61,147 nt of DNA from positions 1 through 61,147 of the forward strand of contig FLMG01003106.1 of the NCBI GenBank assembly GCA_900088475.1, written 5' to 3'. The position numbers and the translations under genes are program-made. Shown here one piece after another: positions 26,384 through 60,419 of this stretch (within the stretch, counting starts at the first letter, position 1; each line of letters begins with the position of its first letter). The notes under the pieces are model-generated. The model was not told where the DNA came from. It saw only the letters and a list, made by a program, of their open reading frames with translations, and searched no databases. The stretch is from Hyphochytrium catenoides. Its lineage: Eukaryota > Protista > Hyphochytriomycota.

Positions 26384-27138
26384 ATGCTGAAGATGCTGTT
26401 GGCCACTAGGCCGAAGGGCCTCTATGTTGTCAGAGGTGTATCTCTAGGAGGACGGGCGAGCTGCTCCAACTTTGGAGGCTGTGGACAGCGAGCCATCCAT
26501 TCCGTTCAAAGGACGGTGGCACGGCCAGTGGAGCTGTCTGGGGTGGGCATCCATTCTGGACTAAAGGCATGCTCGCTTTTTCTTGACTTCTTGCCCGGGC
26601 ACAAGCCCAGCTAACCATTACCTTAAAATGTGTCTCTATTCGTGGTACAGTCCTCCATCCGAATTGAGCCTGCCGGCATCCACAGCGGGATCAAGTTCAT
26701 AAGGCAAGGGCAAGTTATTCCAGCAGCATGGGATCATGTCTCAGATACACAGCTTTGTACCAAGCTCTCTGCCAGGTGAGTGCTTCTTTCCTGCTTCTTC
26801 TCCGTCTTGGCACTTTTCTCCAGCCTGACTTCTACCTAGCCATCAAACAGTCCACACCGTGGAGCACCTCATGGCAGCAATGGCAGCCTGTGGACTTTCT
26901 AACGCACTCATTCACTGCTCGAGCAGCGAGATGCCTGTCATGGATGGTGAGATGGTTTGTCCACGCCGTCCTGGTAGTCTCTTCTATCTACCCCCTTTCT
27001 CTAAGGTTCTCTCGCTCCTCTCTGTATTTTCTCTCAGTCGTCTTTCGCCCTTGATGTCTTATCTTCTCTTTCTCAGTTTCTGTCTCTATTTCCCTACCTG
27101 TCTTTATAATCTCCTACCTTCCATCCTCCTCGTGTTCC

Positions 27139-27177
<39 letters not shown>

Positions 27178-53531: not shown

Positions 53532-56500
53532 ATGGGCGGAATGGCTCTTGTCGACGGAGAGAGAGAAACGGCTGCGTCTCTCTCGGTCTCTCCCCCAGCC
53601 GTCGGTCCATCTCTGTCTCTATCTACTGCCGGTGAGCTGCAGAGACACGGGAGCTTCAAAAGGTTCAAGAGCTTAGGAGAGATGTCTCCCGCAAGTAAAC
53701 AGCCTGTCTTAGCGCTGGAAGAGAAGAGAGAAACGAGAGAGAGAGGTTCTCTCTCTTTCTCTCCTTCTCCCTCTGGCCTGATCACTGGTAGTCTAAGGTG
53801 TACTATAGAGCGTTATCTATGCCAGACTGCGGCCATTGCTGCTCAACTCTATGGGAGAGACTGCGTGGCTGTTCTCTCTCTCTCTCTCGGCAATGGTCTC
53901 TCTCTCTCTGGCTTCTCAGGAATGACAGAAGATGATGCAGAGGTCGTGGTGGAGAGACTGAAGGATTTACAGGGAGACACTGGTCCTTCTGCTCTCTCTT
54001 CTCTTGCATCTTCTCTCTCTAAAGATGGGAAAGGAGTGTTCAGGCCGGGTGCTCTTCTTTCTTCCTCTTCTAGTGAGGAAGAGGGGGACACCTCTCTTCT
54101 CTCTCTCACGGTTCGGCTTCTTATCCTAGAAAAGGAAGAGGCTATAAACCTTTCTGCCTCGTCTCATGAGAAAGAGAGAAGAATTGTAGAGACATTGGAG
54201 CTTCTCCTCAGTCAGTCTCTCTCTTACACTCGTCTCCAGCTATGTGAAGCGCAAACGAGAGAGAGAGAACGCTGTCAGAAAGAGAGACTGGAAGCTGCTA
54301 TGCAAGCTATTCCCATGGGCTTCTGGGAATGGAGGAGAGAAGACGACTCTCTCTCTTGGGAAGAGAGTTGGTTCTCCCTCTATTCTCTCTCCTATGAAAG
54401 ATTCAAAGACATGAAGAAAAGCCATAGGTTGGACGCTTGGATGAGCTTGCTTCACCGGGAAGACGTAGAGAACTTCAGGCGTCTTTTCCAGAATGCTGTC
54501 AACTCTTCAGAGGGCGACTTTGCAGCGTCTTTCCGGCTGAAGAGAGAGAAAGAAGGAGAGACTGGTGCTTCTCTCTCCTCTCCCGGCTTCCAGTCTGCAG
54601 CTAAGATTTATAGAGATGAGACAGGAAGAGCGGTGCGAATGATAGGTGTCGACTGGCGTGCAGATGGGAAGAAAGACTGCTTAACCGCAGAACAGGTGTG
54701 TCCTCGGAGTTGTTAGCTATCTGCTAGATGGTGCTTTTGCAAAAGCTCTCTCTCTCTCCCTCTCCCTGTCTTATCTCCGCTCCCTTTCATCTGTCTCTCT
54801 CTCTCTCTTTTCTTTTCGTATCCCTTCCTCCTTTTCTCTCTCTCTCTCTCTATCCACACACACACGCACACATACACACAAATTCATTCCGTCCGTCTCT
54901 CTTCTCTCTCTTTCTCTCTCTCTCTCTCTTTCGCACCCACGCAAAACCTCACTCCGTCATTCTCTCCCTCTCTCGCCCTTTGTTCCACAGGAACATTTTC
55001 TCCGCGCCATTATCATGCACCTGCCTGTAGCTGTCTGCATTAAAGACATCAACAACAGCCTGCGCTTCGTGATGATCAACAAGAAGGCGGAAGAACTATG
55101 GGAGAAAAAGTCAGAAGAGGTTATCGGCCACAGTTGCATGGAAATCTGGCCTCCAGAACAAGCGGTAAACTTCGCAGAGAAAGACAAGCGGCTCCTAGAG
55201 CGAGGCGAAGGCTGCATCATCGGTATAGACACGATGGGTATGCCAGACGGCAGCTGCCGATATATCAAGAGCAAGAGAGTGCTGGTGGATAATCGGTACA
55301 TCTTAGGCGTAACCGAGGATGTGACAGAGAGAATAGAACTGGAAAGGCAGCTCATTGCGTCGAGAGAAGCGGAAAGAAGTGCTAATCAAGCAAAGTCAGC
55401 CTTCCTTGCCAACATGAGCCACGAGATACGGACACCTCTCAACGGAATCATAGGGATGTCGGACCTTTTGCTCAAGACAGAGTTGTCGGCAGAGCAGCAG
55501 GACTGTGTGGAGACGATTGCGACCTCTGGTTCCATTCTCCTCACACTGATCAACGACATACTGGACTTCTCTAAGATAGAAGCAGGGAAGATTGACCTCG
55601 TGATGGGAGAATTCGATCTGTCTCGCTTCTTAGGGGACTTATGCAAGGCTTTCGCCTTCGCAGCTGAGCAGAGGGGCATCGCTTTCACTGTCGAGCTTCC
55701 TCAGCCGCGGTATAAGCTGCTGGGAGACAATGGAAGAATAGGTCAGATCATCAACAACTTGGTAGGAAATGCTATCAAGTTCACGGCAGAAGGACAGGTC
55801 ACGCTGCAGGCCAGCTTGAGGGAAGAAGCGGCCGAGAACGCCGAAGAAGAAGAGAGAAAGCATGGGCAGGAGCACGAGAAAGGAGAAGCGAAAGCGGAGA
55901 GAGTTTGGGTCTCTCTCGAGGTGACAGACACTGGCATTGGCATCCCTGAGAGTTCGAAGTCGAAGCTTTTTACCTCCTTTACGCAAGCGGAGAAATCAAC
56001 AAGCAGAAGATTTGGAGGCACGGGACTGGGCCTCTCCATATGCAAAGGCTTGTTAGAGGTGATGGGCGGATCTATTAGCTTTGAGAGTAAGGAGGGCGAG
56101 GGCAGCACCTTCAGAGCTACGTTCCCTCTCTTAAAGGGCAGTTTGCTGCTTCCTGACGAAGAGGAAGGGAGAGAGAAGAGGAGAAAACGCGCCGGCGAGA
56201 CAAGGCGGAGTGAGATAGAGAAGAGAGAAGCTATGCAAACGATAAGCAAGAGCCAGCAACGCGAAGGGAGAAGGGCCGGAGAGGAAGAAAGAGAAGGAGA
56301 AGGGAGAATCACCATCTTGGTCGCCGAGGACAACCGGATCAACCAGAAGATCATCGGCAGAATGTTAGACAAGCTGGGGTATGACTATGCCATTGCTGCC
56401 GATGGAAGACAGGCGATAGAGAGACTGTCAGAAGATCCTCTCTCCTTCTCTCTCATCTTGATGGACTGCATGATGCCCGTTATGGACGGGTATGAAGCCA

Positions 56501-56715
56501 CAAAGAGAATAAGACAGAGTGGCGATCCTGGTATCAGAGATAAGCCCATCATCGCCGTCACAGCTAACGCTATCCGAGGAGACGAAGAGAAGTGTCTTCA
56601 GTGCGGGATGGACGGTTATATTGCCAAGCCAATAACGCTGCAGAGTCTCTCTTCTCTCTTGAGGAAGTTTCTTGTAGTTAATAGTTCTTCGAGAGAGAAG
56701 GCCTTAGCGGCATGA
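53532..56715 (+). CDS. Hybrid histidine kinase: PAS(3)-PAS(4)-HisKA-HATPase_c-REC, one intron (about 54696-54990)
   Basis: MGFWEW..LHREDV..VRMIG (PAS), H-box FLANMSHEIRTPLNGIIG, N-box NLVGNAIKFT, DTGIGI, GGTGLGLSIC, and receiver ILVAEDN, LILMDCMMPVMDG, IAVTA, DGYIAKP. Confidence 0.95.
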
Positions 56716-57859
56716 GGCTGCTATTGTCTCTCTCTCTCACCCTCTTTGTTCCCCTTTCTTTCGGCATGTTTGTCCTGTCATTACCCTGATCTTGGCTCTA
56801 AAGCTAGCGCCTGCTGTCTGAAGTGTAATATTACGGAGCACTCGTCATCCAGACATGTGGCATCAATTAATCACCAGCCGCCTTCTGGTGATCCCATCTG
56901 TCTTTCTCTCTTGCAACCCCTCTCTCTTAAGTTCTTTCACAAACTCACCTTCTAAACGATAAGGGCAGTCCTTTAGACGAGAGACAGTCTGCACAAAGGA
57001 GGTAGCGAGGATCTAGTCTTTCCTCTGAGAGTCTCTACACCTTCAGTAGCCGCAGCGGACGCACGAAAGGCACTCTTATCACATGGCTCCAGAGCTCAGG
57101 AGAAAGGGAAGGCCCCAAAATGGACAGAAAGGAGAAGAGCCGGACTTGGATTACTCTTCATCTCGCTCTATCTTTCGCTCCCCTTCCTCTAGCATATCTT
57201 CTCCTGCCCTTCTTAATGTTTGTCTCTCTCTCGTCATGCTCCTTCTGTACATTATCTGACGTCCTTTCATTCACTTGATGAGTAGGATTCAGCACAGAGG
57301 GCAGCTCATACGTCTTCACCTCTAGACCTGAGTCAACCCAACTTTGCTGAGGAGACAAAGGTTTATCTCTTGTTTTCTGGCAAGAAGCCCCTAGATTCGC
57401 TGTCATACTTATGAAAAGTGACTAGTTCTTCCTCGTCCCGAGATAGTGCTCAGCCACTGACAGCAGAGGCCATTGACCGTCTTAACAGTCTTCATGACGC
57501 TTCTCAATTTTCTCTGGCTTTGTCGTTGAATATGCCCCTTAGCTGTAAAGGGGCATATATAAGTCATCTAGAGCCCTTCGTCCCTTGATGATAGAGAGGG
57601 AGAGTGGGATGATCAAGGAAGTAATTGACCTCCATTGCAATCAATAAGGACAAAGAAAGAGAACAGGGCGATGACCTCGTGGAGAGCCGAGAGATGGTGC
57701 GAGCGCGAGTGTGAAAGGGAGAGAGAGGAAAAGAGCCAGAGAGAAAGAGAGAGAGAANNNNNNNNNNNNNNNNNNNNNNNNNNNNNNNNNNNNNNNNNNN
57801 NNNNNNNNNNNNNNNNNNNNNNNNNNNNNNNNNNNNNNNNNNNNNNNNNNNNNNNNNNN

Positions 57860-60419
57860 GTCACAGCTACGGCAGCTGCCCCCTCGAGCTCGCTCAGAAA
57901 TGCACTGGTGTGCAGCGGGCCTTGGAGAAGTTGGGGCCGGGCGGTGAGAGCAGAAAGTGGCTGAGCATAATGTGGGATAAGCCGAGAGAAGAAGCGCCTA
58001 ACCTTGCCCTAAAGAGGAATGCGATAAGTCAATCAAGAGACATTGACTCATCCGATGAGCAGAGATCGATAGAACTTCTAGAATCGAGACGAGTAGAGAA
58101 ATAAGAGGTGGGGCGGACAGAGTCAAGGCATAGAGGGAATAACGTGCGAATAAAATATTAAGAGCAGCAAAGGCGGGAAAGATATGAGAGTGCCGCCATA
58201 GATGTGCCACAAAGGGGAAATGCAGCTTATCAGAGGCTAGAAGATTAGTAGACAACAAGGTGTGATTGGCCCCTGCCTGCTCTTGATTGACTTGCCTGGC
58301 ACATCTCTGGTGCGAAGATGAAGACGGGCTTCCCACTGCTGGCAGCCTCAGAGATCATTGAGATGGAGTCTGGCGTGACAACGATGACATCGCTCTCAGC
58401 TAGCAAGCTCAAATAAGGGTTCACTTCGGTACTCTCCTGTCCCAATTCCTCGGAGGGCTTTGCAGTGGGATCATAAATGAAGATCCGCTCCTCTGAGAAT
58501 TCCTTAGCAAGGGATGAAAGAGAAGAGCGCAACTGTAGTTGGTGTTAGGACAATGCAGCTGACGGTAGTCAACGCAGAATACAACGCGGAAAAAGCTCAA
58601 ATGTAGAGAAGAGAGTGTGCAAGGTGAGTCCAGTTTGCTGGAGTGAATGGCCATTGGGCTGGGCAATGAGAACGTAGTTCTAGCTGACAGATTGTCTAGC
58701 TATACTCTCACTGAATAGATTCAAGCGACTTAGAGAAGACAGCAAAGAGAAAGAGATAGACTTTCCCGACCAGTAGTGCCACGTCCAATCACTGTGGAGG
58801 GCACTATGAAGCGACGTACAGATCACAAGGGACAGTGAACAGCGCTGAGTCTCACCATTGGGTCCGTACGACGAGAAAAGGTGATGAGCAGACTTGCTTT
58901 CCCTCTTCTTGCAAGCTTCACTAGCTCCGCCCTCAGAGCTTCAGAGGTCCTAGCGTCATAGCGGATCCAACCACACGAACCGCCAACGAGCACTGCTACC
59001 TAGACGGATGGAAGGGGCGCAGAAGCCTTATGGCAACCTCTTCTTTCTCCTTGAATCTCTTCTTCTCTGTCTCTTTCCGTCCTCCCGTCATATCTTCTAA
59101 TTGCCTCTATGAATGCTGCTCCTCCCATCTTTTCCTCGGTCTCCATCACCCTCTCTCTCTCCTCCTCTCGTTCAGTCTTTCTCTCTAACCCTTACTATTT
59201 TGGAACTGTCCTTCCGTCCGCACTCACTCTTGGCGCTCTATACTTTTTGAACTCTTGCTGGCCTTTTGCCTCTAGTAAGAGAGAAGGATTCACGTCGTGT
59301 AAGGTCCCAACCGTCAGGTGAAGATTCGGGTGTGCTTCCATCTCGTGGCTGGGAGAGATGAAGTCATGCTGAGGTGTGATGACGAGATCAAAGTGCTTCA
59401 GCGAGGTCCTGATAGCCCAAATTGGTAAGGATTAGAAGTGTAAAGTGGGCCGTGGACCGATAGATAGTAGCTGAACCAAGAGCTGAGCTTAGGGTTTTGG
59501 CCTGCCTTGAAGCCAGGACTGCATAGGGCAAAGCCCGAGGGATACGATGGAGAACGTGGATCTGATAGATAGTAGCTGAAGCAAGAACTGAGCTTGGGGC
59601 TATGGCGACGAAGCTAAGATTATATTGGCAGCACGAGAGATAGGGCGGAGGACTTTATAAGCAGGGAAGGCATAGCGCAGGAAGACCCTAAGCGGGCGAC
59701 AGTTATAGAAGAGCAAAGACGCTAAGAGGTTGGAGCCTCTTGCCTTGGATGCTGAATCTGTATGTTGACGATATCTTTCCCATATCGTCTCTTATACTCT
59801 GCACACAGGCCCACTGTCGTGCGCCCAGAGCCTATGACTATTGCAGGCTTTCCACGCTGTATAAGCTGAGAGAAAGGAATAGCACGATAGCCAGTCCATC
59901 TGCCCCGTGTGAGACGGCTGAGAGTGAGCTGAGCAAACGGAGGGAGAGCTATATTTGAGTCAGTGAGGCCGTTCATCAAGGAAAGCTGCGGAGAGAAGCC
60001 GCTGCACTCAACAAAAGGACTGGTCTTCACTCACATGTACAAAGAGGGACCCTAGCAATAGTCACAGGCAGGCCAAAATGCCGTCCGAGCTTCTCAGCTA
60101 AGCTCAGAGCTTGCTTTTCGGCCCCTGCCGCCCCATTGCCGAGCACTAATATGTGGCTGTCAACGCTTTTGACAAAGGAGCTCTAATAGACAGAGAGAAG
60201 TAAGGATCCTTCTCCAAGTGCAATATCTAAAGGCATACATTATACACAATGAAGCAATAAGCATGAGTCGTGCGGACGAGATTGGCAGACCTTACTTCTC
60301 TGTAGAGAGCGTCTATTATGAAGATACCCTGGCCTCGCAAGCCTCTCTGTGCGAGCCTCCACGAAGAGACTCCAGACCCGTCGATGGCAATTGTGCTGCC
60401 ATTGAATAGCCCAGGTCAT
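57860..60419 (-). CDS. ELM1: ELM1 (mitochondrial fission ELM1 / GtrOC1 family, GT-B-like) protein, about 7 exons; 3' end runs into the N-gap and the first exon is ambiguous
   Basis: ILVLGNGAAGAEKQALSLA, VIGSGRTT, IQIQHPR, FDLVITPQHD, GTLH, VAVLVGG, ITFSRRT, NPYLSLLA..IVVTPDSISMISEAASSGKPVF and GKVRRF. Two introns are GC-AG. Confidence 0.92.
59451..59606. repeat. Imperfect ~50-bp direct repeat (59451-59501 and 59555-59606) inside an ELM1 intron
   Basis: CGTGGACC-GATAGATAGTAGCTGAACCAAGAGCTGAGCTTAGGGTTTTGGC versus CGTGGATCTGATAGATAGTAGCTGAAGCAAGAACTGAGCTTGGGGCTATGGC. Confidence 0.9.

Follow-up and report, generated by a model that had tools for sequence, protein, structure and literature searches.

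We analysed a stretch of 61,147 nt from the protist Hyphochytrium catenoides (GCA_900088475.1, contig FLMG01003106.1, forward strand), referred to here as the window, which carries an intact gene for LpxC, a gene of the ELM1/GtrOC1/KdoT family and a gene with the C-terminal domain of RapZ (RapZ-C). These are three separate nuclear genes. The reading that we favour, with a little more than even confidence, is that LpxC and ELM1 act in one pathway for a lipid carrying 3-deoxy-D-manno-octulosonic acid (Kdo), that RapZ-C is unrelated to them, and that the genes lie near each other by chance. LpxC would belong to a lipid A-like pathway located in an organelle, as is known in plants, and ELM1 would be a catalytically competent protein that moves a sugar, most likely Kdo from cytidine monophosphate-Kdo (CMP-Kdo). 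Its acceptor would be the Kdo-lipid IVA-type product of the pathway of LpxC, and the two proteins would be linked in function as upstream and downstream steps of that pathway.

LpxC catalyses the committed step of lipid A synthesis, for which the substrate is UDP-3-O-acyl-N-acetylglucosamine (UDP-3-O-acyl-GlcNAc). The lpxC gene of the window lies at 26384-28488 on the plus strand. In a local splice model, for which in-frame GT/GC-AG joins were enumerated with a bacterial LpxC from a metagenome contig (L004) as a guide, the gene consists of eight exons (999 nt) that encode 332 amino acids without an internal stop codon. The model is 44% identical to the L004 LpxC over 279 aligned positions, and the closest exon match of this bacterial LpxC is of the alphaproteobacterial type. 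Seven collinear plus-strand pieces (26384-28485) match PF03331 and extend from profile position 1 to 267 of 268; positions 136-159, which went undetected by the profile, are covered by the modelled exon 5.

Exon 1 (26384-26566) encodes a basic leader of 41 residues and the first part of the LpxC domain. Next come exon 2 (26651-26775; profile positions 20-63), exon 3 with the catalytic Glu-His pair in VEHLMAAM (26840-26946), exon 4 (27192-27286; profile positions 103-135) and exon 5 (27556-27654), which shows weak similarity (ITVQVDFQ) and has borders drawn from the reading frame and GT-AG sites only. Exon 6 (27849-27941) carries the ARTFAF motif of the Thr191 region, exon 7 (28053-28156) covers profile positions 187-222, and exon 8 (28296-28488) contains HKALDCAGD, with zinc-binding and catalytic residues, PGH and the stop codon. 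It should be noted that the borders of exons 5 and 6 were set mainly by reading frame and splice signals and less by similarity, and that intron 1 (26567-26650) is of the GC-AG type, with no GT donor possible.

When aligned to solved LpxC structures, including that of P. aeruginosa, and to L004, the model retains the VEHL, ARTF, HKALDCAGD and PGH motifs. All three zinc ligands (His79, His238 and Asp242, E. coli numbering) are kept, as are the catalytic residues Glu78, His265, Thr191 and Lys239. The gene is thus intact and codes for the Raetz-pathway zinc deacetylase, with activity predicted from its sequence, and the complete eight-exon model with all catalytic residues bears out the intact LpxC that the original prediction had described. 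The first 41 residues include six Lys/Arg and no Asp/Glu, which suggests a mitochondrial-type presequence. Like the enzymes of the plant mitochondrial Lpx pathway, given as AtLpxA/C/D/B/K and KdtA in the account of Li et al. 2011 found in PMC5741210, the protein combines a complete domain, including the zinc-binding and catalytic residues also seen in bacterial LpxC, with an N-terminal leader of the kind that an organellar enzyme should have; it differs from the plant and bacterial systems by its one GC-AG intron. A metagenome scan with the last exon returned one bacterial contig only, the source of L004, and no eukaryotic relatives.

The ELM1 gene lies on the minus strand (60161-58296) and comprises five or more exons; those at its two ends were not recognised. 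Three minus-strand open reading frame (ORF) pieces match PF06258, with Pfam values of 2.6e-17 to 4e-7. The most conserved exon served for an exhaustive HMMER search, and a local family hidden Markov model (HMM) built from 84 full-length relatives then gave five collinear exons that correspond to HMM positions 7-279 of 338 and between which in-frame joins are possible throughout. These are exon a (60045-60161; LGNGAAGAEKQA; HMM positions 7-36), exon b (59740-59877; positions 63-108), exon c (59222-59407; FDLVITPQHD; positions 108-165), exon d (58850-58999; LVGG and the SRRT motif; positions 164-212) and exon e (58296-58514; NPY, DSISMISEA and GKPV; positions 215-279). The intron between exons b and c (59743-59409) can be joined in frame only via GC donors, unless a micro-exon is missing.

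Neither end of the ELM1 gene was located. No Met-bearing first exon was confirmed, and the ATG at 60419 given in the original prediction stays an unconfirmed candidate. For the last ~55 residues, all GT/GC-AG joins downstream of 58296 were enumerated and none scored above noise; either the reading frame runs through to a stop 16 residues past exon e, or there is a further, unrecognised exon. A weak match at 57298-57221, beyond an assembly gap, was considered as a C-terminal exon and rejected for its unconvincing score.

That gap (57758-57859), downstream of the recognised ELM1 exons, falls in a (GA)n repeat and is bridged by contigs of two DNA runs (X1 and X3). The bridging contigs have 198 letters between 57729 and 57860, versus 130 in the window, which puts the true size of the gap at ~170 rather than the 102 N given; therefore, the sequence is continuous beside ELM1 and the gap is slightly under-sized. 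Both belong to a single study and may contain data from which the assembly itself was made. Scattered substitutions and small indels (for example at 59491-59501) separate these contigs from the window and suggest heterozygosity or strain differences.

A family alignment of 72 sequences has 19 near-invariant columns, and the recognised ELM1 exons of the window retain every one of them, including S-R-R-T, NPY, DSxSMxSEA and GKP. Exon d reads FSRRT, and SRRT was found in the large majority of ~300 family proteins checked. Identity is ~34-38% to the nearest relatives and ~30% to Rickettsiales-type members. The closest full-length relative, P0007 (36% identity), was modelled with AlphaFold2 as a stand-in (predicted local distance difference test score, pLDDT, of 89), and Foldseek matched this model with a probability of 1.0 to the GT-B enzymes MGD1, MurG, PseG, WaaG and UDP-GlcNAc 2-epimerase. 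From its sequence and from the P0007 model, we assign the window protein to the ELM1/GtrOC1/KdoT family of predicted GT-B proteins. Look-ups of single exons in Protein Atlas gave only the families already assigned. The original prediction had proposed a relationship to GtrOC1-type glycosyltransferases and modelling on GT-B enzymes; P0007 gives a GT-B fold, and the relationship is stronger now that the Acinetobacter member is a proven CMP-Kdo transferase (PMC12856342).

Both LpxC and ELM1 belong to mainly bacterial families, the ends of ELM1 were not located and the splice structures are model-based, as could also be the case if the genes were bacterial contamination or dead pseudogenes. This is barely credible, as both genes have multiple spliceosomal-type introns with in-frame joins and exons without internal stops, all invariant residues are kept, and the genes share their scaffold with typical eukaryotic genes coding for a Wntless-like membrane protein, pantothenate kinase, a longin SNARE, protein kinases and an eEF1A/HBS1-type GTPase. 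Bacterial contamination was rejected on the basis of the introns and the flanking eukaryotic genes. The window DNA is eukaryotic nuclear DNA, with ~50% G+C, and is rich in (GA)n/(CT)n microsatellites and short introns; none of its seven N runs falls inside the recognised exons of LpxC, ELM1 or RapZ-C.

The function proposed for ELM1 draws on a bacterial member of its family. The GtrOC1-type, "ELM1-like" protein A1S_2903 of Acinetobacter baumannii is KdoT, which uses CMP-Kdo to add a third Kdo to Kdo2-lipid IVA, and a Rickettsia homologue partially complemented the mutant (PMC10936431, PMC12856342). KdoT is an inverting GT-B enzyme in which the arginine of the SRRT motif (R180) is essential; it is specific for CMP-Kdo and Kdo2-lipid IVA and is the sole biochemically defined member of the family (PMC12856342). 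The window ELM1 shares with KdoT and its Rickettsia homologue the PF06258 domain, SRRT and the family invariants, as well as the GT-B fold predicted for its closest full-length relative. It differs in being eukaryotic, split by introns, placed in a eukaryotic ELM1 clade and located outside any lipopolysaccharide (LPS) locus.

Three eukaryotic ELM1 groups emerged from a word search (alignment A2) for which eukaryote-like relatives and the exons of the window gene served as seeds: land plants, Mortierellomycota and a mostly metagenomic, intron-poor group that includes a protein of Prymnesium parvum. In the Prymnesium-containing group, two proteins of uncultured eukaryotes, P0057 (737 aa) and P0336 (840 aa), combine an N-terminal ELM1 domain with a C-terminal WaaA/KdtA Kdo-transferase domain. 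They are 46% identical in the ELM1 part and 56% identical in the WaaA part, and the fusion, being conserved between the two, is therefore no assembly accident. The genes next to P0336 code for a mitochondrial carrier (Mito_carr), a bestrophin and a TFIIS/RPB9-type zinc ribbon protein, and on the P0057 contig the WaaA part resumes after an intron-like interruption of ~60 nt; both fusions are therefore eukaryotic. Their ELM1 domains fall in the same eukaryotic clade as that of the window, and P0057 and the window protein share the N-terminal LGNGAAGAEKQA letter for letter. The window ELM1 differs in being unfused, and the window contains no WaaA-like sequence. A word search with P0336 gave no further fusions and was probably swamped by low-complexity words. 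Of the unfused members, P0380 of Prymnesium parvum carries the automatic UniRef label "Lipid-A-disaccharide synthase", which is probably wrong in detail but indicates the same pathway.

A second type of fusion was found in bacteria. In P0040 (Logan SRR13394437), the late acyltransferase LpxL is fused to an ELM1 domain within an operon of overlapping genes, waaA-lpxK-[lpxL::ELM1]-GT4/GT9, which is the clearest tie by genomic context of the ELM1 family to lipid A and Kdo that we saw. By analogy with KdoT, and with indirect support from the ELM1::WaaA and LpxL::ELM1 fusions, we infer that CMP-Kdo may be the donor and Kdo2-lipid IVA the acceptor of the window ELM1. The family also includes tandem double-ELM1 proteins of 665-798 aa (among P0002, P0003, P0005 and P0006), several of which have SART or SSRT motifs.

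In the literature, ELM1 is viewed as plant-specific and host-derived, gained by the ancestor of land plants, and is said to be missing from Chlamydomonas, Volvox, Chlorella and Cyanidioschyzon. An unrooted tree of 87 sequences (IQ-TREE, LG+C20+F+G4), for which bacterial sequences were chosen by similarity and the window ELM1 was entered as joined exons with X at each unresolved junction, separated the window ELM1, 12 plant, seven Mortierellomycota and 20 haptophyte-group sequences (the fusions included) from 47 bacterial sequences. The all-eukaryote branch has an ultrafast bootstrap (UFBoot) value of 94 and a Shimodaira-Hasegawa-like approximate likelihood ratio test (SH-aLRT) value of 88; SH-aLRT was 98 in a quick tree. 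An ancient eukaryotic ELM1 clade is the simplest reading of these sequences, not a proven one. Within it, the window protein sits on a long branch and is weakly sister to plant ELM1 (92/57). With plant ELM1 (Arabidopsis At5g22350, Marchantia MpELM1) it shares the clade (94/88) and the same conserved residues; it differs in coming from a non-plant protist, whereas the literature calls ELM1 plant-specific. The Mortierellomycota proteins (P0144, P0305-P0326) form a well-supported clade of ~450-540-aa ELM1-domain proteins with N-terminal extensions and have SQRT where other members have SRRT; the ELM1 literature examined makes no mention of fungal ELM1.

Plant ELM1 is a mitochondrial fission factor that recruits DRP3, with no enzymology reported (PMC5496855, PMC13650779). 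The main rival to our reading is that ELM1 is likewise a non-enzymatic adaptor, which recruits a dynamin-related protein to mitochondria, has no tie to LpxC and keeps its conserved residues only to stabilise the fold or to bind a ligand. Such a role has support from genetics and localisation in plants (PMC5496855, PMC13650779) and from the grouping, albeit weak, of the window protein with plant ELM1. We consider this rival unlikely, because the donor-site and family invariants, SRRT included, are all kept in the window ELM1 and in 8/9 plants, because WaaA fusions occur within the same eukaryotic clade, and because bacterial family members are proven enzymes. SRRT is kept in eight of the nine plant ELM1 sequences, and the catalytic signature has therefore not decayed where ELM1 is viewed as an adaptor. 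A loss of SRRT in plant ELM1, considered from one Nepenthes sequence with SEKT, was rejected on the same count.

Two further observations from plants and algae bear on a shared Kdo-lipid pathway of LpxC and ELM1. In Arabidopsis, ELM1 and the CMP-Kdo synthetase KDSB are both found on the mitochondrial outer membrane (PMC5100019). A full-text search that paired ELM1 with Kdo yielded the two Acinetobacter papers and two unrelated ones, and nothing in the literature searched links eukaryotic ELM1 to Kdo. Land plants have both ELM1 and the lipid A/Kdo pathway, and Chlamydomonas, which is without ELM1 (PMC5496855), is also without the lipid A/Kdo pathways (PMC5741210). This co-occurrence rests on little, namely one overlapping negative case, Chlamydomonas.

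Several points weigh against the favoured reading. The recruitment of DRP3 in plants is the only tested function of a eukaryotic ELM1. The window protein is a long branch (1.47) in an all-eukaryote clade that has moderate support only. No RNA run was found to contain this DNA, so that the splice structures of LpxC and ELM1 are models throughout, and a truncated ELM1 protein is possible, since the start exon and the C-terminal ~55 residues were not located. KdoT requires Kdo2-lipid IVA, an acceptor that is putative in this protist, and a tblastn search of the window found no WaaA, LpxL or further Lpx genes. Finally, in 80 alphaproteobacterial ELM1 loci (L005-L084), not one had waaA, lpxL or lpxC within 10 kb.

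These 80 loci have a conserved housekeeping neighbourhood of carB, greA, lrp, a 2-oxoglutarate (2OG) oxygenase gene and trxB. In Azospirillum and related alphaproteobacteria, the order is carB, greA, divergent lrp/asnC, ELM1, 2OG oxygenase and trxB (e.g., L044, 2735-12528). The oxygenase is present in 52 of the 80 loci; it resembles prolyl hydroxylases rather than the Kdo hydroxylase KdoO. That free-living alphaproteobacteria keep ELM1 among housekeeping genes, with no LPS genes nearby, would suit an active GT-B enzyme that uses a different donor or acceptor, such as a protein or some other glycolipid, and is uncoupled from the LpxC pathway. The Foldseek matches (MGD1, MurG, PseG, WaaG) are generic GT-B enzymes, which fits this as well, and P0396 has a different fusion partner, a domain of the inositol monophosphatase family. 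Nonetheless, such an enzyme seems improbable to us, given that KdoT, the one member with a defined biochemistry, uses CMP-Kdo and Kdo2-lipid IVA specifically, and that Kdo or lipid A enzymes are the partners in both types of fusion that indicate a pathway.

The reading in which LpxC and ELM1 share a Kdo-lipid pathway can be taken further, and we do so only tentatively: ELM1 may be the eukaryotic orthologue of KdoT, an enzyme on the mitochondrial outer membrane that would extend the Kdo-lipid IVA made by Lpx enzymes and KdtA, as part of an ancestral module kept in this protist, in some haptophyte-related algae, where ELM1 is fused to WaaA, and in plants, and tied to dynamin recruitment and fission. 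The original prediction had proposed that a lipid A precursor is made and then glycosylated or bound by ELM1. The evidence from family, clade and fusions supports a link to Kdo, and the part of the proposal that drew on physical linkage did not stand. The further step from this glycolipid to mitochondrial division was pure inference, and we treat it as speculation.

The physical setting of the genes does not suggest a common unit. From the LpxC stop codon to the last recognised ELM1 exon the distance is 29.8 kb, an estimate that spans five scaffold gaps at 40.9-50.5 kb; therefore, the spacing of ~30 kb, and strictly the linkage itself, depends on scaffold joins. LpxC (plus strand) and ELM1 (minus strand) are on opposite strands, and between them lie genes for an eEF1A/HBS1-type translation GTPase (three ORF pieces, 28647-30548, minus strand), an AGC-type protein kinase (Pkinase to Pkinase_C, 33192-36058, plus strand) and a hybrid histidine kinase with a PAS-PAS-HisKA-HATPase-receiver architecture (53532-56715, plus strand), the latter convergent with ELM1 and all three unrelated to the genes under study. 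If a physical cluster is taken to consist of genes that are adjacent or co-oriented, with no unrelated genes between them, LpxC and ELM1 do not form one, and with RapZ-C included there is no cluster in an operational sense either. The hybrid histidine kinase gene is largely without introns, in contrast to its neighbours, and consists of an upstream PAS_3 exon followed by a single ORF of 566 aa with PAS, HisKA, HATPase and receiver domains. The gaps with flanks that were read (among 3926-3956, 40887-50499 and 57758-57859) are bordered by (GA)n/(CT)n microsatellites.

It might be argued that LpxC, ELM1 and RapZ-C are a physically linked and co-regulated relic cluster, as three such genes share one 61-kb window and, if the genome has at least ~69 Mb (1138 windows of 61 kb), a given single-copy pair would lie within 32 kb with a frequency of ~0.1%, by a post-hoc estimate. 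This is very improbable. The pair was chosen after the fact among many windows, at least three unrelated genes and a change of strand separate LpxC from ELM1, their linkage crosses five scaffold gaps, and RapZ-C is 15 kb away on the other side of LpxC, with unrelated genes between them. Retained operon synteny is also unlikely because the ELM1 clade is old and eukaryote-wide. Thus, the proximity of ~30 kb is most likely due to chance. The original prediction had described an intron-rich, nuclear LpxC, as the splice model and the eukaryotic neighbours confirm, had placed ELM1 ~30 kb from it and had itself cautioned that the proximity might be coincidental; the unrelated genes, opposite strands and five gaps vindicate this caution and speak against LpxC, ELM1 and RapZ-C as one physical system.

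The third gene codes for a RapZ C-terminal domain, which had been placed at 9.5-11 kb and was confirmed there by two plus-strand exons that match PF22740. The first (10266-10412; SFGHRHGLP to DVRSVPN) corresponds to E. coli RapZ residues 160-202 and the second (10846-10986; IGCASGKHRSV) to residues 242-279. Membership in RapZ proper requires an N-terminal P-loop domain and a C-terminal phosphofructokinase (PFK)-like domain, and the C-terminal domain alone is present: no P-loop domain was found, and the 177-aa ORF upstream has no Pfam match. At 9470-10995 (plus strand), the C-terminal domain is joined to a charged, coiled N-terminal region in place of the P-loop domain. E. coli RapZ is an RNase adaptor and a sensor of glucosamine-6-phosphate (PMC7073468, PMC5737377), with which the window gene shares the C-terminal PFK-like motifs; it differs by having no detected P-loop domain, and the GlmY/GlmZ/RNase E system is bacterial. 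In the literature, we found no eukaryotic protein with RapZ-C only. The 15 kb between RapZ-C and LpxC hold unrelated genes (a longin SNARE, a zinc alcohol dehydrogenase and a kinase). Nothing was found that connects RapZ-C with LpxC or ELM1, as the original prediction would have it, and the gene is most likely unrelated to both.

Plants make lipid A precursors in their mitochondria, for a purpose that is an open question, and ELM1 is required for mitochondrial fission in plants by a biochemistry that is equally an open question. In current reviews, ELM1 is still plant-specific and host-derived. New here, as identified from sequence, are probable ELM1 orthologues outside plants that are found alongside Lpx genes; also new are eukaryotic ELM1 proteins of the same clade that are fused to WaaA, while a bacterial member of the family is a proven Kdo transferase. 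The two open questions merge into one hypothesis, testable with assays that have been published, namely that ELM1 modifies or reads a mitochondrial Kdo-lipid. Even should this not hold, the locus offers a clean new case of endosymbiont-type envelope genes kept in a heterotrophic protist. If ELM1 is indeed an orthologue of KdoT, the elusive "lipid A-like" lipid of mitochondria would be linked to the recruitment of dynamin and to the division of the organelle, and this would change the view of a protein that has been seen as a plant-specific division adaptor for nearly two decades.

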